Assembly: GCA_002189035.1 (NCBI GenBank)
Contig: NEEC01000012.1
Span: 744,001-808,000, forward strand
Direction: 5' to 3'
DNA length: 64,000 nt
DNA from: Utricularia gibba
Taxonomy: Eukaryota; Plantae; Magnoliophyta
A program made the translations under genes and the position numbers. Below are positions 7,708 through 54,145 of the stretch, piece after piece. Every line of letters begins with the position of its first letter. Position 1 is the first letter of the stretch. Below the pieces are notes generated by a model, which saw only the letters and a list, made by a program, of their open reading frames with translations, was not told the DNA's origin and ran no database searches.

Positions 7708-7710
7708 TTT

Positions 7711-10700: not shown

Positions 10701-11740
10701 AACGTATTTGGATTCTTGCTTCTCCCTATGTCGGTTGTACGGGTTAAAATTTAACTCGCTGAAATGTTGCTTCGGGGTGCAAAGCGGAAAATTCCTTGGG
10801 CATTATGCATCGGAAAGAGGAATCGAAGCTAACCCCAAGAAAATTAAGGCAGTATGCGAAATGCAACCACTAAGGACAATCAAGGAATACCTGAGTCTCA
10901 CGGGTAAGTTGGCTGCCCTTAGCCGTTTCATATCTCGGTCGACCGATAAGTCGGCATCTTTCTTCAAGGCCCTACAAAAGGGAAACACTTTAAAATGGAT
11001 TGAGGATTGTCGGATTGCCTTTGAGAAGCTCAAAGAGTATCTCTCATCACCCCCACTTCTGGTGGCTCCGAAGGAAGGGGAGCCCCTAGGGCTCTACCTA
11101 TCAACATCGCTTGTCGCGGTCAGCACAGTTTTGACAACCATCTCGTGAGATAAGTACATGCTGGTGTATTATGTGAACAAAGTTTTATTACCGGCCGAAA
11201 CCCGGTAACCAGTGACAGAGAAATTCATCTTGGCTCTAAAAATGGCGGCCACCAAGTTGAAATCATACTTTCAAGATCGGCACATCGTGGTATTCACCAA
11301 TCAGCCTTTGAAGAATATCCTATCTCGACCCAAAATTTCTGGAAGGGTAGCCAAATGGGCGGTTGAGTTAAGCACAATGGATATCGAATTCAGGTCGAGA
11401 ACGGCAATTAAAGCCCAACCTCTTGCCGATTTTGTGGTCGAGATGACTCGGCCAATTGACCAATTTGTGGAGATCAACGACCGGTGGGCCATGTATGATG
11501 ATGGTTCTACATACAACGGGGCTGGAGGTGGAATCGATATCCGAACTCGGGATGGGGAACACATCTACATCACGGTGAAGTTCCTATTCCCTGCATCTAA
11601 TAATGTAGCTGAATACGAAGCCCTAGTCGAAGGGATGAAAATTGCCAAGGAACTTGGAGTTGCAGAGCTCAACATTTATACAGATTCACAGCTAGTACAA
11701 GGACAGTTTTCGGGAGAGTATGAAACCCATGACCCCCTAA
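7783..11740 (+). pseudogene. Tat-1 gag-pol (gag, protease, RT, RNase H, additional archaeal-type RNase H), broken by stops and frameshifts
   Basis: gag YDGKGDP..H and CEIHKTTRHDTVDC; protease LIDQGSSCNIM; RT WVANPVVVPK, MCVDFTDLN, MDAYSGYHQI, MPFGLKNAGATY; RH RVAKWAVELS; aRH SNNVAEYEALVEG..IYTDSQLV, which is a Tat-lineage hallmark. Confidence 0.92.
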
Positions 11741-13779
11741 TGGTTCTGTGCTGTGTTAATTCTTTGAAGAAGGTTGTTACTACTGCACCTGTGATGCAAC
11801 CACCTAATTGGAAATATGATTTTGAGATAATGTGTGATGCAAGTAATCATGTTGTGGGTGCTTATTTGCGATAGAAAATTGAAGGAAAGCACCATGTTAT
11901 CTCCTATGCTTCGAATACCTTGGATGAGGCCCAGAAAAATTATACCATCACTGAAAAGGAATTTCTTGCTGTTATTTTTGACTTGGAAAAATTTCATTCT
12001 TATCTTTTAGGTAGCAAACTGTTGGTATACACTGATCATTCGGCGGTGAAGTACTTGATGGAGAAGAAGGACTCAAAACCAAGACTTATTAGATGGGTCC
12101 TTCTTGTTCAAGAGTTTGATGTTGAGATAAAGGACAGACCTGAAAGGGAGAACCTTGTGGCTGATCATCTCAACGGGATTGAAGGAAGTGAAGGAGATGG
12201 AATCATCACTGAAACATTCCCAGATGAACAGCTATGCTCAGTTCGGACTAGTATACGTGAACCGTGGTTTGCTGATCTTGCAAACTTTGTTTCAACAGGG
12301 GTGATGCCACCGGGAATGGACTATCATGCGAGGAACAAGTTGAAAAGTGATGCCAAATGCTACATATGGGATTATCCATATTTATGGAAGAGATGCAATG
12401 ATGGTGTCATTCGAAGGTGCGTTCATGAAAATGAAATTCCAAAAATCATTAATTCTTGTCATGCATGACCTTTTGATGTCCATCATGGACCAAACTAAAC
12501 AGCCAGAAAAATTTTAGATTGCGGATTTTATTGGCCTCACATCTTCAGAGATTGCTACGCTTACTACAAAGGTTGTGAATCGTGCCAAAGGGTAGGAAAT
12601 TTATCAAACAAAAACGAAATGCCCCAACAAGGAATCCTAGTATGTGAATTATTTAATGTATGGGGTATAGATTTTATTGAACCATTTCCTACTTCAATAG
12701 GTTACAATTACATTTTTGTTGCGGTTGATTATGTGTCCAAATGGATTGAGGCAATCCCTACATGAACTGATGATGCCAAGATAGTGATTAATTTCTTGCA
12801 CAACAACATCTTCACGAGATATGGAACTCCTAAGGCGGTGATCAGTGATAGGGGAACACATTTTTATAATCAGGTCTTAAGGAGTGTTTTGAAGCATTTC
12901 AATGTTTGGTACAAGCCTTGTGTAGTGTACCATCCACAAACAATGGCTAAAGTGAAGTTTCCAATAGTGAAATCAAACAAATTTTGAAGAAAGTTGTGAA
13001 CCCAAGCAGAAAGGACTAGAGCATGAGGCTAAAGGATGCACTTTAGGCTTTACAAACAGCATACGAGACTCCCATTGGGACCTCACCATTTCGGTTGGTC
13101 TATGGGAAGCCTTGTAGATTACCAGCAGCTCTTGATCACAAGGCCTGGTGGGTTGTGAATAAGTTGAATTTTTATTGGAACCTCAGTGCAAGTCATAGGA
13201 AGCTACAGCTTTCAGAACTGGAGGAGTTGAGAAATGATGCGTACGAGAGTTCAAAACTATTCAAAGCTTGGATTAAGAGTTATCATGACGTGCATATTTC
13301 CAGGAGAAATTTCGAGATTGGCCAGAAAGTCTTATTATTCCAATCCAGGTTGAAATTGCATCCTGAGAAACTAAAATCAAGATAGATAGGGCCTTTTGTT
13401 GTGAAAGAAATTTTTCCAAATGGTGTAGTGAAGATATTTGATGAAGACTCAAACAAAGGATTTTTGGTAAATGGGCATCACTTGAAATTTTTTTATGAAA
13501 ATGCTAACATGTTCACAGGAAATCTGGAGATGATCAAGCTGATGAATGCTCCAGAAACGTAGCCACACGAGAAGTCGAGCCGAAGACTATAAACAAGGGT
13601 GCTTATGGGAGGCAACCCATAGTTAAGTTTTTAATTTCAACATTTTAATTATTAGTTTAATCTTTTTATTTTAGGACTTTTATCCATATTTTGTGCTGCT
13701 GGGAAATGATTTTTAGTGTTAAGAGGAGTTATTGATGGGGAGTTATTAAAATCAGACCATTGAGATGAGTGGGAAGTTG

Positions 13780-15500
13780 TACCAGAGGGGAATGAAAAAA
13801 ATGCCCATCACGCTTAAAAGTACTTGGAAGAACCGTTACTGTTCTTCACTTCACCCACTTGTCTGCAATTTTTCTGTGAAAAATTACAGTTGTAGAAACA
13901 CAATGCCGGCGACATGAAGCACAAAGAAAGCCACAAAGGAGAAGTCTGGCCGAAAAAAGACGCAAAAGAAATAGGCGAGGGAAGGAACAGGAGATGCTGA
14001 AGCATCCATCACTGTTGCTCCGACCTAGGAAGAAGCGATTCAGCGTGCTGCTGCCACCATAGAGAATCCTCAAGGAGCAGACGTGATCCCTCAAACAGTG
14101 GAGGTGGGAGAGTCCCCTACAGGGAAAAAGCGGAAGGACCCAGCCTCGAAATTGGAACACACCAGTTTGCAGCAACGTTTGAAGGATATGCAGTAGACTT
14201 ATAAGAAGAGAAAAACTCCAACGGAAGAACTACCAATAGAGCCACAGGTCTTGCCTAAGAAGAAAGGAAAAAAAACATGGAAAGAAAAAGCAGAAGGAAC
14301 CACTGGGGGAATCTGCACTGGAAAAAGAACCTGCTGCACCTAAAGAAAAAGTGCTGCCCGTCATGGAGGAAAATGCTGGAATTTCAAGAAATGAAGAAGA
14401 GGCACCAGAGGAAGAGCCTAAGGCTGAAAATGAAATTAAGGAAGAGAAAAATCAAGAGGAGGCTCGCGATAAAAATGAAACTGGACATGCATAGGAAACG
14501 GACGAACATGGTGTGCAGCCACTAGTCTGAGATGAGAAAGAGCAGGGAACCCCACCTGCAGAAACTACCGCGAGCATAACTGAAGTGGAGCAGGAAGGGA
14601 TGGAGAAGGTAAAGAAATTTCTTCCAAAATTGGTTCCTATGTTCATGAATGCAGGGAAATTTGCTGTGGAAAGGGAGCTGTTCCAAAGACAAATGACCGG
14701 AAAACGAATCCCCTATTTCAAGCACCATGTGGATATGTTGAATCACAAATACCTGAAGTTTGAAACAGCAGAATGCATGGACAGGTATGGAGAGGTGAAA
14801 GGTGCTAAGGTAGATTCACATGATTTTGTTGCTTCTTTATTCGATTATCCAACAGACTTTGATGCTGAAGAATTTTATGGAATTTTAACTGATTAGCATG
14901 TCATTGAATTTAAGGCAAAGGGAATGAAATCTGAATTGTTTGTTGATCTGTTCATGCGATATGTTAGTCACTACAACCCTTTTCGAAAAAAATGTTGGGT
15001 TTAATGCTCTTTATAAATGTGAATTATTTGTGTTGTGGTGCATTATGAATAAGCAGTCTTTGAACTTAGGTGCAATGCTTGCTGAACAAATGAATAGGGA
15101 TTATAGGCGTACTAAAATTCAGCAACTAAGCTTTGGTCAGATTGTTATGCATCTGGTGCATACTCTTTGTCCTGAAAAACTGTTTGAGCTTGAATTTTTC
15201 CATAATGAGACTAAGACAGTACTCCTTGATGCATATTTATTGAAAGTTGCTGGACTAATCAAAGCCCAAGGAAGTGGGTTTGTTTTTAGATCTTTGGCAG
15301 GGCTGGAAAAAAAAGCGTTATCCCACGGAAAAAGAAGGGAGACACTGCTGCTCCATCAACCTCGACTCCAACTCAAGGAGAGAAATGCTCCTGCTGCCCA
15401 GAAATGTTGGAGGTGATGAGCATTAAAATTTTAGATTTAATTCGGGTGATCACAAAGTTAAAACAGGGAGTGGCCGACGCCTCCCTGAACAAGTAATCTG
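13780..15500 (+). pseudogene. Athila env-like/extra ORF, copy 1 (fragmented, internally deleted)
   Basis: Acidic N-terminus, then PYFKHHVDMLN and LFVLWCIMNKQSLNLGAMLAEQMNRDYRRTKI. Homologous to 33169-34671. Confidence 0.7.
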
Positions 15501-16134: not shown

Positions 16135-17505
16135 AAAACACATTTTTAATTATGTTTAAGTGTTAATTTTATAGGTTTAAGTATTTTTATTTGATTAGGG
16201 AAAATATGATTTTTGATGTATTAGTGAGGTGAATCCTTTGATTTAGTTCACCACATGTCTAACCCGATTTTGGAGTCTAGCAACAACCCAAAAGTCAAGG
16301 AAGAAATTTGGATTTCGTGCAAGTCACCAAGGTGCAGGGGCAATGAGTGCACTGTCACGGCGACAGTCTGCAAGTCAAGCCCAAGAGCAGCAGATTTGTT
16401 AGAGAATATACTTGTCTTGAGCAGTGGGAGGCGAGAGAAAGAGGAGGAGGAGAGAGAGTCACAAAAAGGGGAGGACAAGCAGAATTTTCAGAACAGACAC
16501 GAGAGGGTTTCTCCCCCAACTCGAACACGAAGAATACAAAAGGAGGAGAAAGAAAGGCGATTTTTTTGAAGAAGAACTTCCAGCATGAAGGAAGAAGATC
16601 AAGACCCAGTGCAGCGCTATTGTTTCGGACTGTGAACAGTAGTAGACGGAAACCAGAACTCTACTGCTTTCTTTTAGTTTGTTGATATCTTAGTTTTTGC
16701 ACCCAACTTCTGCACGATGTTCTTTACATTTTTGTTGTTTTATGTTAATGTCATTACTTTTTACCTTTCAAATATAAGTAGCTAAAGCCCTAGGGATGCC
16801 TTGAGGTGAAGCATAGTGGTGTGGGTCTAGGAATCTTAATAACATTCACCATTGTTTCTTAGCTTTTGTTTCTATCAAGTCATGGGTAGACCTAAGGAGG
16901 AGAATAAGTAGCTTCACAACTTAGACGCTTGATTTAGAGGTAGACCAACAAATCAAGACGTGAGCAGTAGGTGTTAGTCTGAGGTAGGACCAGTAGAACC
17001 GGGTAGACCTAATTCTATATGCTTTGCATGCGGGTAGACCTAATTGCAATGTTGGTGATGATATGGGGGACTAACTTAGCCGAAAATATGATGAATGAAC
17101 TGGTTAGACTTAGGTTATTTGAAGTTGTGAGTGTAGGAACATGGTAGATCAAATTAGGGATTTTGGCACTATACCACCTGCAGACCCTTAAGGCACCTTA
17201 GTATTATTCTGAATTAGAACCTGTACCTATTACTTTAGCGTTAAGACCTGATATCATTTACTGATCTTGTTTACCGAACTTGTTCACCATTGTAGGTCCG
17301 AGCTTAGGCTTAGACTAAGACTTACCATTACCTTGAATTATGCATCTGCTGAAATACATGACAATCACAAGCTCCTTGTGATCGACCCCGACATCCACTA
17401 TACAAGTTTTCTCAATTTGTATTTTGTGTAGATTAAGGCTTATAAATGTATTTGATACGGAAGTTTGCTTTTATTGCAATGATATGCTAAAATTTCTGTT
17501 TATTA
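16135..17505 (+). repeat. Athila 3' LTR, copy 1 (5' edge and PPT deleted)
   Basis: Aligns along its length with the solo LTR at 39153-40423. Confidence 0.8.
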
Positions 17506-17880
17506 GGCAGCCACGTCGAGATACGATCCTTATGCAGAAAAGCTTTGAGAAGCGGATATTATTGGCCAACTATGAGGCAAGATATTACTAAAATGGTAAG
17601 GAAGTGTAAAGTATGCCAATACCATGCAAGCATACCAAGAAAACCAGTAATCGGAAAAGAATTACAATAAGCCCGTTTCCCCAAGAGAATTTTCGGAAGG
17701 AGACTTGGTGCTCCGAAACATTCAACCACAGAGGCATGTGGGAAAATTAGACCACAACTGGGAAGGCCCTTATCGGATCTCAAGGGTAATTGGAAAAGGA
17801 GCTTATTGTCTAGAAGAACTAGATTGCATAGAATTTCCAAGGTCATGGAATGCCTCGCATCTGAGGAAATTCTATGCCTA
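17506..17880 (+). pseudogene. Tat-1 integrase remnant (H2C2 zinc finger joined to the C-terminus; catalytic core deleted)
   Basis: KALRSGYYWPTMRQDITKMVRKCKVCQ, then DHNWEGPYRI..GAYCLEEL..WNASHLRKFY. Confidence 0.85.
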
Positions 17881-17989
17881 ACCAACCCGATATCAATCTC
17901 TATCATAGGTTTTCATAGGTTTCGGTATTTTCTTAATCAAAACACTCAAATGGTCATAAATTCCTCCAAAGTGGAGATGAAATAACAAA

Positions 17990-18535
17990 ATCGTGAGCCT
18001 TGACGAAGTCATGTAAGCCCAGGCAAGTCTTCTAAATCTGCGCCCCTTGGTGGGCGCAGGAAATCAGCTCGGGGCTACCCCCGAAATATAAAATCCTCAC
18101 AACCCAGGCCCCTAGTGATAAGGGTAAGCCTTGGTACAACTTGGGCACCGGTTTCCTAAAACCATTCGTGTAAGCCCCGAAAAATCCCTTTAGTACAAAA
18201 CGTACTGCCAAATCTCGAGACGGCAAGAGCACCCAAAGCAAATCCACCCGTGTTGTTAAAACAATGGGATTCCAGCTAGAAGAGGGCCCATTCAGATTGG
18301 GGACATTGTTCAACCCATGAGGGGTTCCGATCTACCTCCCTAGAAGTGGTTCAGCTCGCGTAAGGGAAGAATAAGGTAAATTAAAATGTCCAACCAAGTG
18401 GTTGACAAAGGATATACAACCCTCGAGTCAAGTGAGCTCACACAAACCCAGGCACTAGTAAGGAGGGTAAGCCCTGGTACAACTCAGGTACCGCTTCCCC
18501 TAAATCGTCCATGAGAGCCCCGGAAAAACTCTAAG
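17990..18535. repeat. Tat-1 3' internal tandem-repeat region (about 1.3 units)
   Basis: Shares TCTCGAGACGGC and GAAGAGGGCCCATTCAGATTGGGG with the array at 26120-27060. Confidence 0.75.
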
Positions 18536-21500
18536 TTTCCTCCTCGGCCATGCTTTCCGAGAATACTCCTCAACAAACTTTCCTCCTCGGCCAATGACTT
18601 CATCTTTGCATCTTGGTCCTCAACATGTTTTCGAAGCCGAAGGATCTCTTGTGAATGAGTCTCGGCTCCTTTGACCATCCTCCATCCGAAAGTTAGAGCC
18701 TGAGAAGGGGACACCGAATAAAGAGTTGAACCATGTATAACTCCAAGAAAAGAAGAAAACTTGTACCTGCCAGATTCTCTTTAGTATAACTTCCGGCTGA
18801 GCATCCGGAAGACTTGGCTCAGCCTCCCTCAACAACCTCCTCAATTCGGTCGGAACCGACGACGGAGGAAGCATCAAATCGCCCCTTACCTCTGTATGAG
18901 TATGCTCTCTCGGTACGGCATTAGGGGGGGCTGAGGTAGAGGCATCCACTGAAAAGAGCTCCGCGTTGGGAATCGGAGTGAGTTTCTCTTTCCCCTTGTC
19001 AGCTAGGAGAAGGGGAGTCGGCTCCTAACTCTCAAAAACTTCGACCACTTAGTTCCCCTATGGCGGGTGATTGCCAACATCCGAATGAACTTCTGGGGAC
19101 CCAATCTGGAAAGAAAGGTAACAAAATGAGAATCGGGAACCTATATTCACCGATAACGGAAAACAGACCTACATAGAAGGTGCCGGCTCAGGTTCTTGCA
19201 TCCTCTGCATCTCGGCAGAGAAGCAGGCCATGACCGAATCCTCCAGAGCACTTCTCAAGGCCATTTCATCAGCTGCAGCCAAAAATCGGGGAAACAATCA
19301 CAATACACCGCGGATGTTGAAACGTGGGGAAGCAGAGCCTAACTACCTCTTTGCTTCTTAGAGGGTTTATGAGCAAGCGTCTTAACCCTCTTCTTTTTCT
19401 TGGGGGCCACGGGTTGAGTGGTTTGGGGAATCAGAGACGAGACAGGAACTAGGGAGAGACTCGGAGGAGGATGGGGGGGGGGTCGGTAAACCGGCGCCTT
19501 TAGAAGGCACAATATCGGGCCAATTAGGATTGCGAGAACGGCCGATAATACCCAACCTCCTTAGAGACTCCCCCGAAAACATCAAGGAACGGGTTTCGAA
19601 CCGAAAGGAAGCTCAGCTAAGCCTTTCGTATAAGGCCTCTCAAGATTCGGACGAGGACCGATATACATCAAAGAGCTTTACTCTAAAGGGAGTTGGGGGA
19701 TTAATCGGGAAGTTCCACCAAAAACATGAGGGGGGCGCCACCCAGACAAAAGAAGACCACCAGTCATGGTGGGTATCGGGAGCTTTCACAATGAAGTGAG
19801 GATTATCCTCAAATCGGCAGAACTGGAAGTGAGAGCATCCATCCATGGGGGATTTCACTTTTCGGACAGCAATTTTGAAAAGGTGAAGAAAATCTACTAG
19901 GGTCATAGCTGGATCCATACCAATTGAATAGATTAAAAACATAGCGAAACAAAAGATGGAATTAGGGACAAGGCAATAAAGCAGCATGGCGAAAGTATGA
20001 AGGAACTGCACTATCAGAGGGTGAAGAGGAATCTGTAAACTGCTTTCAAAGTAAGCTAAGGGAATTGGTAAGCTGAAGGAAGGAAGCGGGCTCTCACCTA
20101 ATCCCCACGGGATTTCAGTTGTTAGTGTATGTGCTCTAGAGACAATCAATTCATTAGCAAATCTTATCTTATGATATTTACTTTGAATTGTGATCAAATT
20201 TATATCATTGATAAAATCCTCTACTTGATCTATGTGCTATAGAAATTATGATGAGATCATAATGTGAGATTCTTCAAGCACTCATGATCAAGTTAAAAAC
20301 TCCCTAGCTAGAGTATTTGTGAAATGAGGATATCACAAATACGGATAAGCTGGCACACATTGAGTTCCCTAAATTGTTTAGGCAATGGTTCTCACAATTG
20401 ATGTAATGAGATTACTAGAACCTATGTGTGGGTGTCGATTAGAGAATCGATTCACTGGATGACTCATCTTCGAGATGCTACTATGGGAAGCTAACCAAGT
20501 GTCAGTAGCAAGATCTCGAATATGACAGCCGTGCAATTAAGCTTAGACTTGAGGTCAACAAAGTTATCTTGATCTTAAGCTCACATTTTCGCTCATTACT
20601 AATGGGAGCCTAACCATGGCTTGCCTAGTATGGATGAGTAGGGATGTGACTCCTTAAGGTTGGAGATAGTTGATTGATCAATAAAGGATTCATCACTCAT
20701 GCTAGCGATGAGATCATATCTCAAGTAATTGTATCAAAGCCTAACAGTAAGTCCTAGGCCCAGGGTAATGACACTCGAATTGTTTGAGTAGGTCATTGAG
20801 TGTTAGTGCTTGAATGCAATTATAAGTTCGATACATCAGAAAGACACACACCCATGTTCTAGTATCGAATGAGATATAAGTATGATGAAAGCTGTTCATT
20901 GCATGGTGGATGGTTATGGAAAGGCTCAATCAGTTCACCTGATTATTCTTACATCTTGGGGATCATGATATGTTGCTAGACATCACTCATGATCGATAAT
21001 GATGGATTTGATTAATTAAGAGTTAATTAATAAATCCATTATTACGGCCTTGATTGAAGAAGCCTATAGGGTCACACACAATAGTGGAGTCACTCAACGA
21101 TATAAAATAGAATAACACAGTTACATGAGATGTAATTGGTAAAGTGGATAAATTAAATTGAGAGTTATTTTGAGATTAATATTGATTAAACTCAAAATAA
21201 AAGATCATATATAAATAAGATTTGGAACATATACATATCTCCACAAGATAAGATCTTTACGAAGATATGATTTGATATGTTACCATATATCTGTCAAAAG
21301 ATTTAGATTTTGAGACATGCTCCATGGGTCTTCGTGCTATCAGAGACTAATCCACAAGGGGGCGTTTTTCTCTACTAGCACCTAAGGAATTCGACCAGCA
21401 TTCCAAAGCCTTGAGAAGGTTATTGACGGAGTGCTCCACGTGTGGATACCATAGAGGCCGTCTCCTATTGGCGGTTGGTGAACAACGGAGTCATCTGAAA

Positions 21501-21714
21501 GGTATTTCAGCATCCCTTAGTCTGATGTATTCTGTATTCCAAGATCTGCGTTGGGGGTTTCTCAAAATTTTAAAATTCCGCTGCTTTTGAGACATACGAT
21601 GTCTACGAGAAACCCAACATCAGTATCCTGAGCGTGAGAAACCTAGTACTCATCAGGGATCAAGCACCGAATGCAGAGAGAAGGGAGGTCCAACTCACTA
21701 GATCTTCTACCCAT
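18535..21714 (-). pseudogene. Spliced antisense gene of Tat-1 (Transposase_28-like N-terminus, basic NLS-like patch, coiled-coil C-terminus); interrupted by the Angela LTR and 3'-truncated
   Basis: ATG at 21714. Coding resumes after the LTR with QIPLHPLIVQFL..LVPNSI. GT-AG introns at 19346-19273, 19168-19106 and 18766-18700. PKKKKRVK near 19385-19407. Confidence 0.8.
20120..21619 (+). mobile_element. Ty1/copia (Angela-like) solo LTR, 1500 bp
   Basis: TGTTAGTGTATGTGCTCTAGAG...AACCCAACA flanked by a perfect 5-bp TSD, TCAGT/TCAGT. No PBS or internal region. Lineage assignment is from recalled LTR motifs. Confidence 0.88.
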
Positions 21715-22191
21715 GTTCAGAAAAATGAAGGAAGGAAAAAACCCTAAAAATAAATGGAAACCCGTGAGAGGGAAGAAGGCAAGAGAAAAAAGAGAGCCCA
21801 ATCAAACCCCAAAAAGCCCAATGGAGAGGGTAACGAACTGACTGATACCTGAAAATTCGCAGTTCGCAGTGGGAGTACGGTGGCGTAGGCGACGGACGTA
21901 CCGTGTTGAAATTTTGTGGAGGAACATAGAAAGCAAATGGGAGGAATGATGGGGAAAGTGCATATTTATAAGGGGATACTCGGAAGACGAAACGGCGCGT
22001 CATTTGAGATGCCCAAAATGAGCTGGAAAAAGCATGGCGCACCCAAGAGGCGACAAGTGGCGATGAAATCGGCCTAAACCGGTACGAGACTTACCCACAG
22101 AAAAGTGATATGCCTAAAGTCGGTATAGTAATAATTCTGACTCATCGATTTGCCTTGAAAAGGCCAATATCGGTAAATCAGAGGGGCTGAA

Positions 22192-22708
22192 TGTTGAGGT
22201 ATAAATCGGGTGAGGATAATCGGTTTCTGAAAGGTTGCCAAAAGGAGCTTTGACAAAATAATGCCAGCCGAAAAATCAATATGTGTCAGAGATCTAACAG
22301 CGGCGACCATATGGCACAGTCTGAAAAGTAGCCGAATTACAGCAGAGTAGGCGGCCGGTATCTGAAGAGCGAGATCACGATACAGGCACAGAAAGCAACC
22401 GACATGTGTAGGATTTAGGACTCGGTCAGATTGGCTTCTTCAATAAGTAGAGGAAATCACGAGGGGAAAGGGGTTCGATCCTTAGCTTCCCAACTTGTAT
22501 TCTCTCCCCTCAACTCCGTCTAGTGAAGATTATCTCCAGCGAGCTCCGGCAGCTCCGTGGAATTTCTGTCTTTCGATGGTTTCCACGTAAAAATCTTGCT
22601 TTATCCGAACCCCGAATACCATGCAAATTCAAACGGAGTACGCTGCCCCCGGCCACACCCATAACTCGAAATTTGGCCCAACCCGGACACCGATGTTCAC
22701 CCTTAACA
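22192..22708 (+). repeat. Tat-1 3' LTR (517 bp)
   Basis: Preceded by purine tract AGAGGGG. Aligns with 7192-7707 and ends CCTTAACA. Confidence 0.9.
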
Positions 22709-23984
22709 CTTCTAATAAATAATGCAAATGCTCAAATATTTTTATTTCATTTGTTATGTAGTTTTCATTTATACAAATTTTGTAAATTATAAAAAAAAAG
22801 AGTTCTTAATATTTTATCTTATCTTTATGATTTTTTTGTTATTGTATTTTATTTTAATAAAATTTTTAGATACATTTTTTTAACAAATTAATAATATATA
22901 TTAGATTTAGAATATAGAATTTAATATTTAGTATTTGCAATTTAGGGATAATATAGCATTAGGTTTCAGGGAAAATTTTATGGATGAAAGTTGGGTTGCA
23001 TTGGGCTTCCCTAAGTTCCTGACTCTAGTTTTAAGGACTTTCACCAAATTTTAGGCTACAGTTAGGATGAAATTTATTTTTTTACTGTTTTGAAATCCAT
23101 GATTTTAATTTGTTTATTCTTTGAGTTGGACCAGCTATAGTTGGCCCATCGCCCTAGTATTTTTTAAAAATGTATTTTATAAAATTAAATATTTAAATTA
23201 TAAAGATTGATTTTAGTTAAATAAATTACAAAGAAGCTTGTTTGTAGAGATTCCAAATTTTAGCAAATATCAACTCAAAAAGTTTTGAAGTAGATATTAT
23301 TTGAATAAAAAAATGAGATTCAAGATTGTTTTTCAAAATGGCATTCATGACAATAGAAGTGCTGATTGATCGTTTTGAAATTCGGATACAATCGTCGCAA
23401 AACTTGAACAGAAGGATGTCCTAATCCACTAGCGTGGACAGTAAGAAAATCATCACCATTATGATGTTTCTGAAGAGCATAACAAAAAATATTGACAGGA
23501 TTAGATGAAACTACGAGCTGGGTAGAGAGATCAAAGGATTTAGTATCTAGAAGATAGAGACCATTCTGAACCGGTGCATTTTGGGGAGGTGGTGAGATTT
23601 AATTATTTTTCTCTTGGTTTTGTGGTTGCGTTTCCTTGCAGCTGCTCGCAGTGTACTAATAGTAAGTGGAATCGCAGTGGAATTTCATTTTTGGGTGTTG
23701 TGGCTTCACAGGCTTTACATAACACAAGGAAGCAAACAGAAGCTTCTGAAGCACCTGAGGGATTTGGGAGATGAAGAGCTTCAGGGTTGCCATCAACTTG
23801 AAGTTGTTTCATAAACTAGGAGACAACATTCCTGCATACCTCATTGGAGTGAAAGCAAGTAGCGAGTGATGGTGGAAACATCCTGAAAGTGATATGGTAC
23901 AACCAAGTAGTATTTATGAATGTGATTGATGATGGGATGTCTGGTCTGGCTTCTTCGAGTCCCCTTTTGGGCCAAATCAAATGA

Positions 23985-24661
23985 TCACTGAACCTGGGCA
24001 TCGTAGTTGAATCCAACCCTGGGTTTTCCCATGCTGAAATTCAAGACTCTGGCCTCCATGTTGTACTGAATCTCTCCTTGATACAGCATCCTCCTGATAT
24101 AATGCTCAATGTCCGAGCCAATCAAACGAAGTGTGTATTCTGTCAACGGAGCTCCCTGTTCCACCATACCACACAATCAATAGTCTTCAGACTTTGAGAA
24201 GAGCAAGAAGGGTTGAGACGATTGACCTCATAGTAGTCGACGAGCTCCTGGAAATAGGAGTAGACTTTGTTGCAGGTTTCATCAGTCCATACGAACTCAT
24301 CAGTGGGATCAAGGATGAGGGTGAGCTTATCGGTCTGAGTCTGATCGAATTCGCACGTCTCAGGATCAATATAAGCAGCGTAAATCCTGACATGCCTTGT
24401 GGTGCTGCTGAGCCACTGCCCTCCCACGTTCCTTTCCATGTTCTTACTTTTCACATTCACCTGCTTCTCAACCGGGCGTGGCTGCGTGGGTATCTGGCTC
24501 CTGCTCTCGACACTCTTCTCTGGTTCTTCTCGGACGCTCGCCTCTTGGGATGAAGTCGCCAGAATCACGCTTCGTCTCTTGACTTGGCTCCTAATCCTCC
24601 TCCAAGCCGTCGTCGCCAAGCCGGCCGAGGCAACGTAAGTGGAAGTTGAACAACAAGACAT
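23985..24661 (-). CDS. NDHM: NAD(P)H-quinone oxidoreductase subunit M, chloroplastic; exons 24661-24227 and 24155-23985, 201 aa
   Basis: RPVEKQVNVKSK, GGQWLSSTTRHVRIYAAYIDPETCEFDQ and VYSYFQELVDYYE|GAPLTEYTLRLIGSDIEHYIR..RVLNFSMGKPR. A 71-bp phase-0 GT-AG intron and an Arg/Ser/Ala-rich transit peptide; no lesions seen. Confidence 0.97.
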
Positions 24662-25970
24662 CCTGACGGCGGGGAGTGGATTGGATTGGATCCAGGGCTA
24701 CTACTGGTTCGCTTTGCTGGTTTGCTTCCGAGGATAAGAGAGGACTGGAGTGTCGTTACATCCACACGTTCTGGTCTATAACCACTAACAAATTAGAATC
24801 CATATTCTGACGTGACGGTAAAGGGAGTGCAAAAAACCGTATCTATCTATTATGCGCCTCTGCATCTAAGCTCTACCATAAACACCACTTTCTTAATTCT
24901 GGATCTACGAAATTTCAACATTCAATGTGAATATTCTCATTCTTTTAATTATTCAACCATTTCAATTATTTGTAAGAAGTAGTTTTGTTGGTTGGTTAAT
25001 TGGTCACATTTTATTCATGAAATGGCTTTGGTTGATATAATTCTGGATACTGTAAAATAATTATATTAGATAGAATAAGTACAAGTAGCTTGGATTAGAA
25101 TTTATGAATTCTATGGCTCGGATCTTTAGTATTCTCTTATTTATTACTTGTCTCTAATATTTAGGAAGAATACCGTCCTCCACTCTTATTAAGAAACTGA
25201 AAGAAAGAAAGAAAGAAATCCAAAAAGTATAAGAAAAAAAGAGCTTATGATAAGAGATAAGAGATAACTAACTTCGGAAGACAAAATACAAATAAATGAA
25301 AATAAAGATAAGGTACCAAAAACCCAATCTGTTTTTGAAGAATCTTATCTAAAGGAAAAAAAAAAGTCCACTTTTTTGTTTGAGAAAGTTCTTACAACTC
25401 TTCTTTTCGATACATTAAACTAATCAATTTGACAATGCCATCAAAAAGGAAATGCCACAATATTTTTTCCTCTAAAAGTACATGAGTTATCACCAAAACT
25501 ATTGATGGGTTGTAAATTGGCCAAAGATAATCAGGCTCTGAAAAGACTGCCGAAAGGAGCTCTGAGGAAACAGTGTCTGCCGACAGACCGATATGTGTCA
25601 GAAATCTGACAGCGGCGGCAATATGGCGCAGTCTGAAAAGCGGCTGAACCATAGCAGAACGAGCGTCAATCATCTGAAAAGTAAGGTCACAGTGAAAGTA
25701 CAAAAAGCAACCGACACCTGCAGAAAGGGCAGATTCATATAGATCGGCCTCCTCGATAAATAGGAGAAGTTCCGAAGAAAGAGGGGTTGAATCCTAATAC
25801 TCAAAAAACTTGTATCGCTTTTTCGATCACCTCCGTCTAGTAGAAGTCTTCTCTGCCGAGCTCCGACAACTCTGTTGTTTTTCCGCCTCACGGTGGTTTC
25901 CACGTAAAAAATCTCTGCCTACAGTCATCTCATCTGGTCGCGTCGAGCGGATTTTCACCCACAACATATT

Positions 25971-25988
25971 TGGCGCCCACCGTGGGGC
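25971..25988 (+). promoter_or_regulatory. Primer-binding site, tRNA-Lys(CUU)
   Basis: Exact TGGCGCCCACCGTGGGGC, 4 nt after the LTR-terminal CA. Confidence 0.93.
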
Positions 25989-26119
25989 CATCTATCGTCC
26001 CACTCGAGAAATCCACAGAGGTCACCCACCAAACATCAACCATGGCAGAAAATAAAATGGCCACGAATTCTGTCCACACAGGAAGCATCGGCATGCGAAA
26101 CCCTGTCCCGAGTGATAAG

Positions 26120-27060
26120 GATAAGCCCTAGTATAACCCGGGCCTCGGTTCCCGCAATTGTACACGTAAGCCCCGAAAAGGCCCTTAAGTACTAACCTTA
26201 CCGTCAAAATCTCGAGACGGCGAGAGCACACAAAGAAAATCCACCTATGCTCAAAACACTAGGGTTTCAGCCAGAAGAGGGCCCATTCAGATTGGGGAAG
26301 TCGCTGAACCCATGAGGGGTCTTCGTCTACTTTCCTAGCAGCGGTTCAACTCGCGTAAGGAAGTACTAAGGCAAATCAAAACTGAAAAGCCCAACCAAAG
26401 GATTCGCAACAAGATATCTATCCCCCGGGTCACAAAAGCCTAGACGAACCCTCAAAATTTATGCCCCGCTAGAGGCACAACAAACCAACTCGGGGCTGCC
26501 CCCAAAACATGTGATCTCCAAAGTCTAGGCCCCAGTGGGAAGGGTAAGCCTGGGTACAACTCGGGCGCTGGTTCCTACAACCGTCACCGTAAGCCTCGAA
26601 AAAGCCTTTAGGTTCAAACCTAATTGCCGAATCTCGAGACGGCGAGAGCGCCCAAAGCAAATCCGCACGTGTTTAAAACAAGGAGATCTCGATCAGAAGA
26701 GGGCCCATACAGATTGGGGAAGTTATTCAACCCAAGAGGGGTCCCCCCCTACTTCCCTAGCAGCAGTTCAGCTAGCATAAGAAACAACCACAACAAATAA
26801 AAATCCCACTAAATGGACGACAATAGATACATGACCTCCGGGTCATGTGGGCCCCGGTAAGCCCCCCAGGTCTAAACCCGTCATGGGCACAACAAACCGA
26901 ATCGAGGCTCTCCCCGAAATATAAGACCTCCAAAACTCTAACACAACTTGGGTGCCAATCCTCCCTAAATGCTGTTCGAATAAGCACCGAAAAAGCTCTA
27001 AATAAAGAGAACGCTGCCGAATCTTGAAATGGTAAACATGCCCGAAACCGATCCGGCTAT
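26120..27060. repeat. Degenerate tandem repeat of about 420 bp (about 2.3 units) in the Tat-2 3' region
   Basis: TCTCGAGACGGCGAGAGC near 26210 and 26632; a weaker third copy near 27020. Confidence 0.8.
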
Positions 27061-28508
27061 GCCTTGAAAGCACGGATCTGACCAGGTGAAGACATATTCG
27101 AAGTAGGGAAATAACTCAAACCCAGGTGGTTCTCGAGCATGTCCTTAATGAAAATCGAGTGATTACAAGAGAATACTTGAGCGAAGAGCCCGGTCGGGTG
27201 ATTGGCGAATCGTGCAACTCGTAAATATCAGTAAAGGCGAAAGTAGTAGAAGCCAAAGATAATAAAATCAGAAAGAAGAATCCCGAACCGGGATCTCAAA
27301 GTTTCCAAAAACCCCAGAATCGGAGACAAGAACATTAGTTCAGCAAAAGAAGAGACAAGGAGATTAAACTTCAGGAGGAGGAGGGGATCGCTGCGAGGAC
27401 CGACTGAGGGGCCAACATCCTCCGAAGCCTCGCCAGCAGTTTGGCCTCATTCTCCCGCTCGATTCTAGACCGAATGAGTGTAATCAAGCGCGCCCGATCA
27501 ACCTCGAATCCGAGTCCAAGTGCAGGGTGAGCATCCGCGATAACATCGAGCATATTCTCATCCTTCGTCAGAGGGTTGACCCTTTCGAAGTGTGGATCCA
27601 TAATGGCCAATCCAAATTCTCTGCTTGTTACGAGTGAAAATCGGTATGGCGGACTGGGCCGATTTCGGGTTGCGGGTGGTATTGTGTCCTTTTTTCTGTC
27701 TGTTCGGTTTGATTGGATAAAATAGAAGTAGGCGGGGATTGTGGAAACCACCGTGAGGCGGAAAAACCACGGAGTTATCGGAGCTTGCCGGAGAAAATGT
27801 TTACTAAACGGAGATGATGGAGAAAGATACAGATTGGGAGGCTAGGGGTCCAATCTTCTTTCCCACCATGATTTCTTCTACTTATGAAGAGGGAAAGGGG
27901 ACCGACCCGACCGAATCATGAGCTTCGCATGTGTCGGCTATCTTTCTGTGCTTGTGCTATGATCTTACTTTTCAGACAATCGTCGCCCATTCTGCCGTGA
28001 TTTAGTTACTCTTCAGACTGAACCATGCAACTCTGTCAGATCCTCTGACAAATATCGATCGGTCGACAGACATTATCTCATCGATGACCTCCAAGAGTCT
28101 AGGCTTCGATGATATGGGTAAGCCAACTCGGGTAACCCGCTTCCTCACATTATTCGTATAAACCCCTCGAAAAAGCTTTAAGCAAAGCCCATGCTCCTCG
28201 TTCTGGATATGGCAAACGCATTTGAAACAGATCCGAATATATCCCGACAGCGTGGATCTCGCCCAAGACGACCTATTGAAAATGAGGCGAGGTTCCACTC
28301 ATAACGAATACTCAAGCACGAAAGTCCAACTATTTAACTCGCCGAGCAAATCGTGCGATTCGCAGATTGAAGCAACCAGTAAAAATAGAAGGCAATATGA
28401 CCAAAATAAGGGAAGCGAAAGAAGCAATCCAAAATCGGGACTCCCCGAAATACCCAAAAAACCCCAAACCGGGGACAAAAATGTTAGCTTCAAGCAAGCG
28501 AAGGAAAA

Positions 28509-30520
28509 TTAAGAGAAACTAAAGTTCAAGGGAGGGAGATCCGTAGGAGGACCAACTGAAGGGCCAACATGCCCCTGTAACCATGCCCGCAGCCTAGCCT
28601 CGTTCTCCCAACCGACCCTAGTTCGGATAAGTGCAACTAGGCGTTCGTGATCCACTTCAAAGCCAAATTCAGGAGCAGGATGAACGTCCGAGATGATGTC
28701 GAACATGTTCTCATCTTTCGTCAAGGGGTTGACACTGTCAAAAAACGGATCCGTAATGGATAGTCCGAACTCCTGGCTGATTTGACGCCTTTGTCGATAT
28801 AGAAGCAGACTGATTAAATCACCGGTGTAGATGTCCAACAATTCGGAGAAGCAAGCCGACTTCACGAAATTCTCCAAAAGCTCCCGCTGGGATGCCTCTT
28901 GCTCGAGTAGTTTGGCCTCTAAGGCCAAAATGCGTTCTTTGCTCTACTTTAACTCCTCCTCAGCCTCTTGAAAACGCATTTTAAAGTTTTCCTTCTCAGA
29001 GTTGGCATCATCGATCGCCTTCCCCATCTCCCTCACTAACGTCTGCAGCTCCTCCTCCCGGCGGGTGCGCTTCCTGAGAATACACCTCAATGCACTCCCT
29101 TCCTCTCCCAGTGAATTTATTTTGGCATCCTATGCCTCAACTTGAGCTCAAAGCTGAGAAACTTCCTCCGTGGTGGATCCCATTTCCTTGGCCATCCCCC
29201 ATGCAAAGGTCAAAGCCTGGAAGAAAGGTAATCAAGTCGTCATCCGAGCGTGCATTATCCTGAGAAAGAATAGAACCTGCCAAATTCCCTTGAGTATAAT
29301 TTCCGGCTCAACTCCTGACATACTCGAAGTCGACTCCTCTAAGGCTTTCCATAGCTCCTCTAAGGCTTTCCGAAAAGGGGTCCCTGCCGAGAACTGGACT
29401 TTCGACAGGCATCAACGAGGGAGACATCTTCTTTTTCCCTTTTCCAGAGGTCGAAAAAGGAGCCGTTTCCCGAATCTCATGAACCTTAGTTACTCGGCCT
29501 CCTTCCGCAGTCAAATCAACAGCATCTGGGTGAACTTCTGGAGAACCGGCCTAGCGGAATAAATAAAAAGGGTCAGACTCGGAAATCGGAAGTCGATGTA
29601 CGGGAAAACAGACCTGTGCGGGAGGAGTCACCTCGGACTCCTGCATCCTCCGCATTTCGGCAAAGAAACGGGACATTACAGAGTCCTCCAGTGCACTTCC
29701 TCGTACCATCTCCTCAGCTGCACACGAAAGTGGGAAAAACGGTGAAACATGATGAAGGCATTATGATTCGGGGAGACAGAGCCTAACTACCTTTGTGCCT
29801 TTTGGAAGGCTTCTGTGCACGAACTTTAACTCTTGTTCTTTTCTTTGGAAGAGAATGGCGAACAGAAGGTTCAGAAATTGGGTCGGGGGAAGATGGAATT
29901 ATCGAATCGGAAATGGGAGGTGTACCAGAAATAACAGGGGTATCGGGTGGAGACTGAAAAAGGTGACGAAATTCCAACTTAGAACCAAGGGGAATGATGA
30001 AATCAGACCAAGGCCCCCCCCCTCCCCTCCCCCCAAATGTGGCCAAGGATCCCGCACGCAGTTAGTGTGTCTCGTGAAAGCATCTGGGATCGGGACTCGT
30101 ATTTCACAGAGCACTCACTGAGCCTCCGATACACATCCCTCCGAGAATCGTTAGAAGGGCGAAAGCGGCCGAAGTTTTTAACCTCAAAGGGACTAGGGGG
30201 TTTAATTGGGAAGTTCCACCTAGCTCCTATAGGGGGAGCAACCCAAATAAAAGAGGACCACTAGTCATGGTGAGTATCGGGAGGTTTAACAACGAAATCG
30301 GGATGATCTTCGAATCGGCGAAACTGAAAGTGAGCACGCCGATGCATCGGCGGTTTAGCTTTTCGAACAGCTATTTTGAAGAGTTGGAAAAAATCCACCA
30401 AAGTCATCGCCGGATCCATTGCCGCCAAATAGAACAAGAAGGCCGTAAAGTAAAAAATTGAGTCTAGGGCCAGGAATTAATCCAGGAATGCGAAGGAGAT
30501 GTGGAGAAAATACGGATACC
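28509..30520 (-). pseudogene. Spliced antisense gene of Tat-2 (N-terminus deleted, scattered stops, one frameshift near 29310)
   Basis: MDPAMTLVDFFQLFKIAVRK matches the Tat-1 copy. GT-AG introns at 29790-29718, 29613-29551 and 29276-29217. The last exon is E/K-rich and ends PPLNFSFS*. Confidence 0.82.
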
Positions 30521-31748
30521 TGAAGAACGCGCAATTTCCGATGAGCGGCACGGCGGCGAACACAATGGAACACGAATGGTGCTGAAACTTCACGAAAGAA
30601 CAAAGAGGGCAAAGGGGAGAAGTGACGGGAAAAAGGCGTATTTATGAAGGAAGTGTTCGGGAGGCAAAACGGCGCACTGTTTGGAGTGCCCAAAATGAGC
30701 GAGAAACAAGCGTGGAGCATCCTGGAGGCGACGCGTGGCGAGGAAATTGTTTTGGGTGAGTTAGAGGCCCAACCTTGAGAGGACGATATGCTCGAAATCG
30801 GAATAGTTACGATTCTGATTCCCCGACTTGCCCGAGAAGGGTCCACATCGGCAAATCAGAGATGGACCGTTTGTGTCAGATCTCTGAAAGGCTGCCAGGT
30901 GGGCTCTCCATGAGATAATGCCTGCCGATAGACCGATATGTGTCAAAGATTTGACAGCGGCAATATGGCACAGTCTGAAAAGTGGCCAAGTCATAGCAGA
31001 ACGGGCAGCGATTGCCTGAAAAGCAAGATGACAGTACAAGTACAGGAAGGTAGCCAACACCTGCAGAACTCATGATTCGGTCAGGTCGGCCTCCTCTATA
31101 AATAGAAGAAATCATAACGACGAGGGGCTTGGACCCTAAGTCTCACAGCCTTTACCTTACTCCACCACCTCCAGTAAGGCAGTTTTCCTGCGAGCTCCAA
31201 CAACTCCGTGGTTTTTTCCATCTTACGGCAGCTTTCCACATAAAAACCTTTGCCTGCCTTTCTTTCTTTCGATCACACTGAACAAATAAAAAAAAAAGCA
31301 TAACAAGGCACGATAATTCTGGTCGCATTTATAACCCAAAAATCGGCCTCACCTCGGATTCCGATTTTCACACCTAACATATAGGTCGATTGTTGATCAT
31401 ATTTTAGTTGAATGCTATTAAAAAATTAAATAAAGGAAGAATTTAAATCTAATGACATATTGTACATACCCTCTCTCTCCCCTATCTCCTTTAGTGCAAT
31501 TTGAGAACTGCTATTAAAATTTTTTCCCCTTTGCATCATATCCTATCATTATTTTCGGTTTGCAAAACACCATTTTTTGTTTATCATTTTTAAAATACCG
31601 TATATTAAATCTCCCTTTTTAGAATTCTAAATCAAAAAAATACAAAGATAATCAAACTAACAAATGAATTAAATTCATATAATTGAAAAACTTACAATTA
31701 TAATTAAATTCAACAATGAACGACATACCTCACTCCATAGGATCATAT

Positions 31749-48504: not shown

Positions 48505-51500
48505 CTATACACATGTCTCCATATCTAAATCTACAGTCTGATTCTCCGGTATGAGTGCAGGCCCGTTTGGGTCCTCTTCGTCGTCACTGACATCTAGACC
48601 GATGTAATCTGGGAATTTTCCATCATGAAAACCTGCATCAACCTTACCTGTAGAGAACGGCTTCTCTACGAATGAACAACCAGCAGCAGCAGCATCGATG
48701 AGCTCACTGTCGAAGTATCGTCCACGAGGAGCATTTGCATCACCAGGATTAGGCGTCTTGTCTGCTTTTATCTTTGGATGGTGGAGCTTGCACGTGGATG
48801 CCTGAGGGCATCTTCCCGTGGCTTCAAATGCAGGACACACGTATGTGTGTTTCCTTGGGCACTAGAGTTCAGACAGACAGTAAAACATTTTACAAGATCT
48901 AAGGTTAGCGGCGAAAGCAGAAGCGAGAACCATGAATGATGATCTGGTGCAGGATTCAGCATCTGAAGGTATCTTACAGAACTGGATCAGCACCCAGTCC
49001 AAAGAGTTGGATACAGGAATATATAAAAGAGTGCTTTAAAAGGTAACGAAACAGGGTGGACAGCACATACCTCATTTCCATCGACACAATAGCCTCTGAG
49101 GAAACTCTCACAGACAGATGAGTTGGGGTTTATATTAGCATGTCTATAAGGGCAATTATCATTCGAGCATGATCCTACAACAGGATAAGAGTGCCAAGAA
49201 ATCAGACGCCCTAGGAAGTTATTCCCAAACACATGCAAATCAATGATGCTTATATTGCCCACCTTTCAAGAAGTAAGAGCAATCTTGCATCCTCTCAGGG
49301 ATAACCTGCATGACATGATTTTGAGCATTAATATGCACATCCATGCTTAAGCATTAAGATAAGCCACCACCTTGTGAGTCAATTTGCAACCGGGATTGGA
49401 ACAAGATCCACTCAGAAACTTCGTGCAAACCACAATTTTAGATGGGTCATGGATGTAAGGGCACTTTCCACCATCCTTGTTGCATTTTCCATATCTGGTA
49501 AAAAATTGGCAATATTTTCTCTTCCTAGCCAACCGTAATCTGGCAGTATGCAGGCTCCGTCGGATCTTCTCACTTGCTAAAACTCGAGTTCGTTTCTTTG
49601 GATCTCTTACCAATTGGTTTCCTTTGCCAATTCTCACGTATCTAACCAAAGTTTAACACATAAGTCACAAACCCTCGGCCATAGTCTTTTTTTAAATCAT
49701 CGAATACATGAGAAGAATAAATGCTTGAGCTACAAAGGTGAGATGTAGGTGTATATATTAAAGGGTAAATACCAAATAGAACTTACTTTTCACAGCCTAA
49801 CAAAAATTTCCTTGGTACACAATTCTCGTTATTGGTCTGGGAGTGGATAGCTGAAGATGATGACCCTCGTTCGGCTGCATAGAAAAAAGGGGATGGGGCG
49901 TTAATTACCATATTACAGGAAAGTGCAAATGCAGCAGCAGTTGTATTTATGGAAGAAAAGAGGTTCGAATATGCGAACCAGCAGACACTTCCAGTGCAGA
50001 AGTAAATAAACTTTGGGTAATTCCCTAACCAGTGGACAGCTTTAAAAAGGAAAACCAAGAAACAACCTGTGATTCTCTGAAGAGTCCTCCTTGATGGATC
50101 CATCTTGTATCGCTCCGAACCAATTAGAAATGTTCGATCCCCTGCTTTATAGAAAGTACAATAAATATGGTTTTTGATAAACAGTAAGGCACATGGCATA
50201 CACGCCGTGGACACGTATTAAAATCAAACAAATTCAGATTCATCCAACCCAAGATTCCAACATCTTACTTGGCCACACCTCTACACAACAAACTTACTTG
50301 GAATAGAACAGCTCAGTGATGTCACACCAGTCTCTCCATCTTTTGTAGACTCCTTCACAGAACTGCCAGCAGAGATATTCTCCTACACGGAAGCTATTGG
50401 TTCATTGATGAGGATGCTTAGCTAAAATCCACGAGAATCAGTATGAAACTAACCTCAGTGGCCTCCTTCGTACACTTCTCAGTGGATTTCACCCACTTTC
50501 GGGCAGACTTGTAGACATTTTGGGCTCTGGACATCCTAAGAGAATACCCATGAGATGATCTAACATAAAAGGTACCTCTTTTCCTTGTAAATAAGAATTT
50601 TTTACTGCAGAATAATTTAAAAACACCAATAGATCAGTAATATTTAGTTTATGATGCATATCAAGAATTTCTTGATGGTCCACAAAAAGAAAAGAGCATA
50701 AACAAACATACCTAGTGGGCAGCGCATCGGTGCTGTTTTCTCTCATATAAACAGCATGCTTACAGCTTCTCCAGAAAGTACTTTTTTTCCATGGTAAGAT
50801 ATGTGGAAAAAACTTTTGAGTGGCGATCACTTGCTTATGTTTGCTTGGAGACTGCTTACCATGTAACTTCCAAACAAAAGAAAAATTCGAGTATTTGATT
50901 GCCTTTGAAAGAGCAATGATCCGCTTTGTGGATGGCCTTGTAAGAGTCGCACGAGCCAAAACTTGTGGAGGGCTTATGCAAGTCTCTGCTTTCTTGTTAT
51001 GAAATCCAGAATGTTTTCTGACAAGCTGGTTGTCCTTACTCTTGAAGTAGCCGAGAGATGATGCTTCACTTTTTTCCAGATTGGCAGATTTGCCAGCGGG
51101 AGTGGGAACTGCAACCAACTGATATCTTTTCCTTTTTATGTATCTCATCTCCTTCCGAGACTTTTCATCTTCTACCACATAACGACAGTCAGAATTATCA
51201 AGTAAATCTGCATTGCAGATAGGAACCATGGAGGTCATCGCTGCACCTTCCTTTGAAGTTTCAAGTGTTTGGCAAGGTAAACCATTTCCAGGGGTATTCA
51301 TAGCTAAAATTGGGCTATCAGATTGCTTATCTGGGAGCTGTGATGATCTTGAAGCGTCAGCACCATGAGTCCTGCCATTACATGGCTTTCTATCTTTATT
51401 ACAACAAGAAATCAGCCTAGAAACAGGCCTCTGAATTGAAGGTAAACCATCCCTTGAAAGAAGTGGCTTCCTCACAAGAGTATTACCCTTTCGCATATAT

Positions 51501-54013: not shown

Positions 54014-54145
54014 AGGTTCACTTGAATCAACGGAAGTTTTTCAAATTTCACAACCTTGCAGGTTTGCTTGTACGTTTGTTCATCGACCAAACGATTCAAT
54101 GGCGAAAGATGTTTTGTTCACAAAACCGCTTGTTTATCGACAATC

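Follow-up and report, generated by a model that had tools for sequence, protein, structure and literature searches.

A 64,000-nt stretch of the Utricularia gibba genome (contig NEEC01000012.1, positions 744,001 to 808,000 of the forward strand; here called the window) contains two diverged long terminal repeat (LTR) retrotransposons, Tat-1 and Tat-2, both of which carry on the minus strand a gene interrupted by three GT..AG segments at homologous codon positions. The logic of the reading frames, the T-rich composition of the segments, the conservation of their splice sites and one contig that bridges the junction at intron A support the view that the segments are true spliceosomal introns, in agreement with the multi-exon accessory gene proposed in a preliminary description of this DNA. 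We consider it very likely that this is an intron-bearing antisense accessory gene of a Tat lineage VI element, transcribed by RNA polymerase II (Pol II) and located between pol and the 3' LTR. We judge it just as likely that the gene has several exons and that splicing removes at least intron A; individual splicing of introns B and C, predicted from comparison of the two copies, is likely to a somewhat lesser degree.

Both stretches were read on the minus strand and the proposed exons were translated, giving the following gene models (positions are those of the window; a slash marks a splice border).

29791-30509, minus strand: Tat-2 exon 1 remnant; back half of Transposase_28, linker and basic motif PKKRTRVK, resembling a nuclear localization signal (NLS); N-terminus deleted
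29790-29718, minus strand: Tat-2 intron A; 73 nt, GT..AG, phase 1, in-frame TAG at +7 to +9
29717-29614, minus strand: Tat-2 exon 2; 104 nt, open
29613-29551, minus strand: Tat-2 intron B; 63 nt, GT..AG, phase 0, donor GTCTGTTTTCC, in-frame TAG formed at the acceptor
29550-29277, minus strand: Tat-2 exon 3; 274 nt, one internal frame change
29276-29217, minus strand: Tat-2 intron C; 60 nt, GT..AG, phase 0, in-frame TGA; junction ILKGIWQ/ALTFAW
29216-28509, minus strand: Tat-2 exon 4; coiled-coil-like stretch and C-terminal domain, stop codon at 28509-28511, three internal stops
20197-19347, minus strand: Tat-1 exon 1; interrupted by stops and one frame change; encodes the Transposase_28 domain, a linker and the NLS-like PKKKKRVK
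19346-19273, minus strand: Tat-1 intron A; 74 nt, GT..AG, missing from a related contig of run X1
19272-19169, minus strand: Tat-1 exon 2; 104 nt, last codon TAG (CAG in Tat-2)
19168-19106, minus strand: Tat-1 intron B; 63 nt, GT..AG
19105-18767, minus strand: Tat-1 exon 3; 339 nt, frame kept, three stops
18766-18700, minus strand: Tat-1 intron C; 67 nt, GT..AG; junction ILKRIWQ/ALTFGW
18699-18487, minus strand: Tat-1 exon 4 remnant; C-terminus lost

Every one of the six segments has GT at its start and, behind a pyrimidine-rich stretch, AG at its end, and the exon upstream of each ends in AG. At intron A of Tat-2, for example, the borders read KPSKRHK plus G/GTAGTTAGG at the donor and TGCAG/CT at the acceptor. 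The coordinates, GT-AG ends, phases, 104-nt exon and three homologous positions given in the preliminary description are exact to the base in both copies. Reading all three Tat-2 introns also confirmed its statement that each contains an in-frame stop, and intron A of Tat-1 has one as well; intron C of Tat-1 is open, yet it enters the wrong frame of exon 4. The terminal TAG of Tat-1 exon 2 (19171-19169, minus strand) stands directly before the GT of intron B, and the change from the CAG of Tat-2 is a C-to-T transition of the kind expected from decay at sites of CHG methylation.

Both antisense gene copies in the window are pseudogenes, dead relics of the gene, as had been stated before. In the Tat-1 copy, stops interrupt exons 1, 2 and 3, exon 1 also contains a frame change, and the C-terminus is lost. 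In Tat-2, a partial element, the C-terminus is complete down to the stop at 28509-28511, while the N-terminus of the gene is deleted (relative to Tat-1 19919-21902), the Transposase_28 part contains a stop, exons 1 and 3 have frame changes and exon 4 has three stops.

Despite this decay, the two copies retain the signature of purifying selection on the exons that the preliminary description had supposed. Over 207 ungapped codons read in the frames predicted by the splice model, the proportions of nonsynonymous and synonymous differences (pN and pS) between Tat-1 and Tat-2 are 0.196 and 0.69, and the ratio of nonsynonymous to synonymous substitution rates (dN/dS) is about 0.12, compared to 0.72 and 1.34 when the same alignment columns are read in the other two frames. 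Differences at codon positions 1, 2 and 3 number 55, 37 and 101. The ratio is 0.07 for exon 2 alone (34 codons) and 0.13 for the first 50 codons of exon 4 of Tat-2 compared to Tat-1. Such a low pN with saturated pS indicates that selection maintained the gene during the divergence of the elements. Across intron A the selected frame changes in both copies, and across intron C it changes in Tat-1; the two copies of each of these introns differ in length by a number that is not a multiple of 3 (73/74 and 60/67 nt), yet excision restores a single frame in both copies. Furthermore, the TAG at +7 to +9 of intron A is common to the two diverged copies and, given the saturation of synonymous sites, it must already have been there while the exons were under selection.

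The introns themselves show a very different pattern of divergence, as the preliminary description had noted in contrasting exons that stay similar as protein with intron interiors that diverge apart from the splice ends. Intron interiors are 27 to 49% identical compared to 58 to 77% in the adjoining exon blocks (27% for intron C between Tat-2 and Tat-1, with a T content of 37%); the interiors are diverged to saturation, against a dN/dS of about 0.12 in the exons. Introns contain 36 to 46% T and flanking exon blocks 13 to 24%, the U-rich composition of plant introns. The longest identical run in the 1.5-kb alignment (16 nt) lies across donor A, donor B has a 13-nt identical run that is tied for second longest, and acceptor A has one of 9 nt. 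With conserved GT and conserved AG occurring at 0.016 and 0.024 per alignment column, respectively, the chance of three frame-restoring conserved GT..AG pairs at the required places is, by rough estimate, about 1e-5 or less.

At the donors, every base is conserved as far as position +14 in intron A (19348-19333, minus strand) and +11 in intron B (19170-19158, minus strand), with Tat-2 equivalents starting at 29792 and 29615; this is beyond what base-pairing with U1 needs and occurs despite saturated synonymous sites. A splicing enhancer might account for it, as might a signal on the opposite strand.

None of the sequencing runs searched contains the stretch itself; contigs of four runs labeled as the same species (X1, X2, X3 and X5) were aligned to 18300-22200 at 80% likeness. 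X1 contains a 434-nt contig, covered at a mean depth of about 6, that is about 87% like Tat-1 exon 1 from 19834 to 19347. Its fit breaks off exactly where exon 1 ends, at 19347, and 13 letters follow. On the gene strand these read CTGAAGATATGGC and agree with the start of exon 2 at 11 of 13 positions in Tat-1 and at 10 of 13 in Tat-2, but with the conserved start of intron A at only 2 of 13. In the whole window, both strands included, the sole match to this overhang with no more than two mismatches is 19260-19272, which are the 13 initial bases of exon 2, and the homologous Tat-2 site is among the matches with three mismatches. The chance of such a match at one prespecified position is about 1e-5. 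The fit of the overhang to the exon 2 start therefore indicates that a related copy exists in which exon 1 is joined to exon 2 at the predicted borders. Another contig of X1 (182 nt) aligns to 21734-21689, at the likely start codon stretch, with flanks that look homologous and carry indels. Thus, X1 represents two separate parts of the antisense gene and no other part of the 3.9-kb stretch; nothing from X2, X3 or X5 aligned to it.

In both copies, a net skip of 1 nt (modulo 3) is needed between the Transposase_28 part and the NLS part of exon 1. A fourth intron in this exon was considered and rejected as the likelier reading: the X1 contig keeps the region, with 86 letters for the 84 at 19449-19532, and since these 2 extra letters could alone reconcile the exon 1 frames, another intron is less likely.

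Several observations weigh against a spliced gene. No intact copy of it was seen, some stretches of exon 1 and exon 3 are as diverged as the introns, and intron B, at 63 nt in either copy, has a length divisible by 3 and in Tat-1 no in-frame stop. The status of X1 as RNA is a guess, though the run has the shape of a transcriptome assembly. All transcript support comes from a single contig with a 13-nt overhang at intron A: of the junctions at which the preliminary description had looked to transcript reads, that of intron A is bridged, and no contig from the four runs aligned to exons 2 to 4 or to introns B and C, so that for these two introns the evidence is comparative. The same contig lacks 74 nt (19669-19742) without GT-AG ends, indicating that its source copy is itself defective. 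This skip was rejected as an intron, there being no GT-AG under any allowed shift, and is read as a deletion in the source copy. At the protein level, the PF04195 (Transposase_28) match to which the preliminary description had pointed is present in the N-terminal open reading frame (ORF) of Tat-1 (19643-20197; profile positions 5 to 67 of 69) at an E value of 6e-4 and 20.4 bits, which in this decayed copy falls below the gathering threshold of 26.2 bits. No homologous protein or gene model from other genomes was retrieved in protein and metagenome searches.

Heavy decay of both copies, the length of intron B and its openness in Tat-1, and exon stretches as diverged as introns are all points for a gene without introns, in which the segments are fast-evolving linkers or decay within a once continuous antisense ORF and the GT/AG ends arose by chance. 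We regard this as very unlikely. The selected frames flanking introns A and C do not connect unless the segments are removed, the shared TAG of intron A dates from the time of purifying selection on the exons, no nucleotides of the region are better conserved than the donor sites, the composition switches sharply to T-rich within the segments, and the X1 contig joins exon 1 to exon 2. Another view would be that several independent small antisense ORFs are present, a Transposase_28 ORF and a coiled-coil ORF among them, and not one spliced product. A survey of Retand elements did find about 1.6 antisense ORFs per cluster, with Transposase_28 and Smc-like matches in different ORFs (PMC11963269). 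However, exon 2 has 34 codons and no start codon, yet its dN/dS is 0.07, conservation reaches each junction from both sides (IWQ/ALTF), and the first two exons are directly joined in the X1 contig; separate ORFs are, if anything, slightly less probable than a gene without introns.

It could also be that the introns are real and the gene a passenger, a host gene fragment captured once and now decaying with no role for the element. The gene has no assigned function, both local copies are dead, and the literature leaves the origin of the domain open (PMC7264820, PMC11963269), all of which would fit a passenger. Against this stand the pN of 0.196 retained between two element lineages in spite of saturated synonymous sites (pS 0.69) and the presence of a Transposase_28 ORF in 97% of recently active Retand clusters (PMC11963269), so that we rate a passenger gene as improbable as a gene without introns. 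Hence, a spliced accessory gene of the element is the reading that we favor.

The product of this favored gene can be divided according to its exons. Exon 1 encodes the N-terminal domain, which is a probable but unproven member of Pfam PF04195 (Transposase_28), as the sequence match suggests; in the nearest Atlas feature clusters of the N-terminal piece (score 0.96), PF04195 is found in 82 to 94% of members. The end of exon 1 encodes the basic motif (PKKKKRVK in Tat-1 and PKKRTRVK in Tat-2), which is like the NLS of simian virus 40. Exon 2 is short and acidic, exon 3 is variable, and exon 4 encodes a helical, coiled-coil-like part and a conserved C-terminal domain. The coiled coil is indicated by weak matches to coiled-coil families (E values of 0.01 to 0.03) and by long helices in a low-confidence model; no basic leucine zipper (bZIP) match was found in the profile search. 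Structure prediction gave mean confidence (pLDDT) values of 38.8 for the N-terminal piece and 50.6 for the C-terminal piece, too poor for fold searches. A HMMER search of the 144-amino-acid C-terminal piece against 1.84 billion representatives retrieved one spurious animal protein (P0001); a word-indexed search of the 185-amino-acid N-terminal piece, whose length filter leaves out full-length relatives, retrieved nothing, and a metagenome scan gave only a chance match to a bacterial ATPase contig (L001). These blanks say little because plant transposon proteins seem to be poorly represented in those libraries.

Upstream of the coding exons, both copies contain a region that resembles a promoter and leader.

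30520-30645, minus strand: Tat-2 upstream region; ATAAATA box at 30645-30639, leader exon end at 30520, followed by GT at 30519-30518
21643-21970, minus strand: Tat-1 upstream part; TATAAATA at 21970-21963, leader exon end at 21849, GT at 21848-21847, likely start codon at 21714 and a short open stretch after it

The Tat-2 region aligns with Tat-1 21640-22110 at 74% column identity, with the ATAAATA box and TTCAG/GTATC conserved. The shared box and TTCAG/GTATC apparently fit a promoter, a leader exon and a leader intron with a conserved GT donor and an undefined acceptor. The end of this leader exon is the reason for the end coordinate of 30520 given earlier for the Tat-2 feature. The TATA-like box lies in the internal region, about 230 bp inside the 3' LTR border.

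In Tat-1, the short N-terminal open stretch from 21714 ends in a TAG directly before GT (21645-21643, minus strand), which suggests a further phase-0 donor. Between this likely start codon region and the Transposase_28 ORF (from 20197) lies an AT-rich stretch of about 1.2 kb (20130-21350), perhaps a nested insertion or a section of a long intron; Tat-2 has lost the whole region, which prevents a comparison of the two copies.

The host element is best defined in Tat-1, a 15.5-kb element whose bounds were set by self-comparison and LTR ends (TG..CA).

7192-7708, plus strand: Tat-1 5' LTR; TG..CA ends, from self-comparison
22192-22708, plus strand: Tat-1 3' LTR; 87.7% identical to the 5' LTR
27380-27670, minus strand: third fragment of the antisense gene; C-terminal domain, stop-free, 51% amino acid identity to Tat-2

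The plus strand of Tat-1 encodes gag, reverse transcriptase and a dual RNase H upstream of the antisense gene, which is situated between pol and the 3' LTR with its reading direction towards pol. The dual RNase H consists of a Ty3/gypsy-type domain followed by an archaeal-like one, as in lineage VI (Retand) elements, with an RT_RNaseH match and then RVT_3 and RNase_H matches at 11209-11871 (plus strand). The region from pol to the 3' LTR is about 4.3 kb (from about 17.9 kb to 22.19 kb), within the span of 2.9 to 6.6 kb in Retand elements (PMC11963269), and the known architecture of Tat lineage VI includes an antisense Tr28 domain fused with a coiled coil (Ustyantsev 2015, PMC4408406). Judged from the sequence features of dual RNase H, long pol-to-3' LTR region and antisense Transposase_28, the host element is a Tat lineage VI (Retand-type) Ty3/gypsy LTR retrotransposon.

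Other parts of the window show rearrangement and further retroelement sequence. The surroundings of Tat-2 are rearranged (25502-28084), with an LTR-like piece at 25502-26103, copies of a repeat from the Tat-1 pol-to-3' LTR region at 26107-26934, the third antisense gene fragment at 27380-27670 and an inverted LTR-like piece at 27740-28084. The piece at 25502 is only about 73% like the Tat-2 3' LTR, and the two are therefore probably not a pair. Tandem Repeats Finder returned zero arrays in 17500-31500. Inside Tat-1, a second RNase H and integrase block and a weak Transposase_32 (PF20167) match (11875-13382 and 14928-15413, plus strand) suggest a nested element or an internal duplication. Long ORFs of 1,174 and 518 amino acids at 50489-57815 (minus strand) probably belong to another retroelement, in which tblastn found no copy of the antisense gene.

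These features together would make the antisense unit an ordinary-looking Pol II gene, with a TATA-like box, a leader exon and leader intron, and four coding exons parted by three short (60 to 74 nt) U-rich GT-AG introns of phases 1, 0 and 0. The element would replicate via plus-strand RNA, in which the introns read CU..AC; this is not a splice substrate, and the introns would therefore be copied through each round of reverse transcription. Survival of introns in genomic RNA of the opposite strand follows from established knowledge of splicing and retrotransposition and fits the data. The antisense mRNA alone would be spliced. It would probably start downstream of the internal TATA-like box, with the ATAAATA region acting as promoter, and introns B and C would be removed from it along with intron A. 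The product may be nuclear and act in trans on the nuclear steps or regulation of its family, a role that is favored because the counterpart in Grande is reported to be a nuclear product expressed from a promoter of its own (PMC7264820).

The gene family and its position were already known, and it is the exon-intron architecture that is new as far as checked. The full-text literature searched describes no introns for such antisense genes, so that the suggestion in the preliminary description that this architecture may be undescribed holds within that scope; subscription papers lie outside it, and an earlier mention there is possible. The word "intron" is absent both from the Retand survey of 617 assemblies (Vicient 2025, PMC11963269) and from a review of additional ORFs (Vicient and Casacuberta 2020, PMC7264820), the latter ending with a call to look for spliced antisense transcripts. 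If introns are present, ORF-based surveys would split or miss the gene, which possibly accounts for the difference between one survey that detected Transposase_28 in 23% of Retand elements (PMC6317226) and another, counting short ORFs, that reported it for 97% of recently active clusters (PMC11963269). A split gene would likewise explain the 1.6 or so antisense ORFs per cluster and the separation of Transposase_28 from Smc-like ORFs. The presence of introns would further suggest that the gene was acquired as genomic DNA and not by transduction of a processed transcript: a spliced transcript would be an unlikely source of an intron-bearing gene in a retroelement, and the origin is left open in both dedicated papers (PMC7264820, PMC11963269). 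Extending this further, we tentatively raise the possibility, which we hold to be rather doubtful at present, that the separate antisense ORFs of Retand/Tat-VI elements across flowering plants, one for Transposase_28 and one for an Smc-like coiled coil, generally belong as exons to a single Pol II gene that contains introns and has a promoter of its own, these introns perhaps being old and kept for a function. Splicing might, for instance, make the accessory mRNA look host-like, which would allow its export and translation and protect it from RNA silencing, unlike the unspliced sense RNA. The element would be a natural plant case in which the two strands are handled differently by the spliceosome, and a correct gene model would be the first step to expressing the real protein of an accessory gene that is near-universal in recently active Retand clusters.

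The closest counterparts are Silene Retand ORF4, rice RIRE2 and maize Grande gene23, which are likewise antisense, located between pol and the 3' LTR in elements with a long pol-to-3' LTR region, and composed of Transposase_28 and a coiled coil. Accounts of these genes describe plain ORFs, whereas the window gene has four coding exons and three conserved introns. Among plant LTR retrotransposons of the Tat group, a spliceosomal intron is also known in Ogre (Tat lineage IV), between gag-pro and pol (cited in PMC4408406 and PMC6317226). The intron of Ogre is in sense orientation, and only a portion of the genomic transcripts lose it; the introns of the window gene are antisense and cannot be removed from genomic RNA.

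[quoted passage not shown] In these viruses as in the window element, an intron is carried through reverse transcription, and the product is nuclear, although for the window gene this is a prediction. Deltaretroviral antisense transcripts start in the 3' LTR and have one intron near their 5' end, whereas the window gene has a TATA-like box internal to the LTR, three introns in its coding region, no sequence relationship to the viral genes and no bZIP match. The window gene is thus an analogue of HBZ-type retroviral antisense genes and not a member of them. The same logic, in which splicing occurs only from the transcript that has the intron in sense, underlies the antisense-intron cassettes used as retrotransposition reporters (PMC12786077). 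These cassettes are mirror images of the arrangement proposed here: their intron is sense to the element and is lost on transposition, whereas the introns of the window gene are antisense to the element and are kept.

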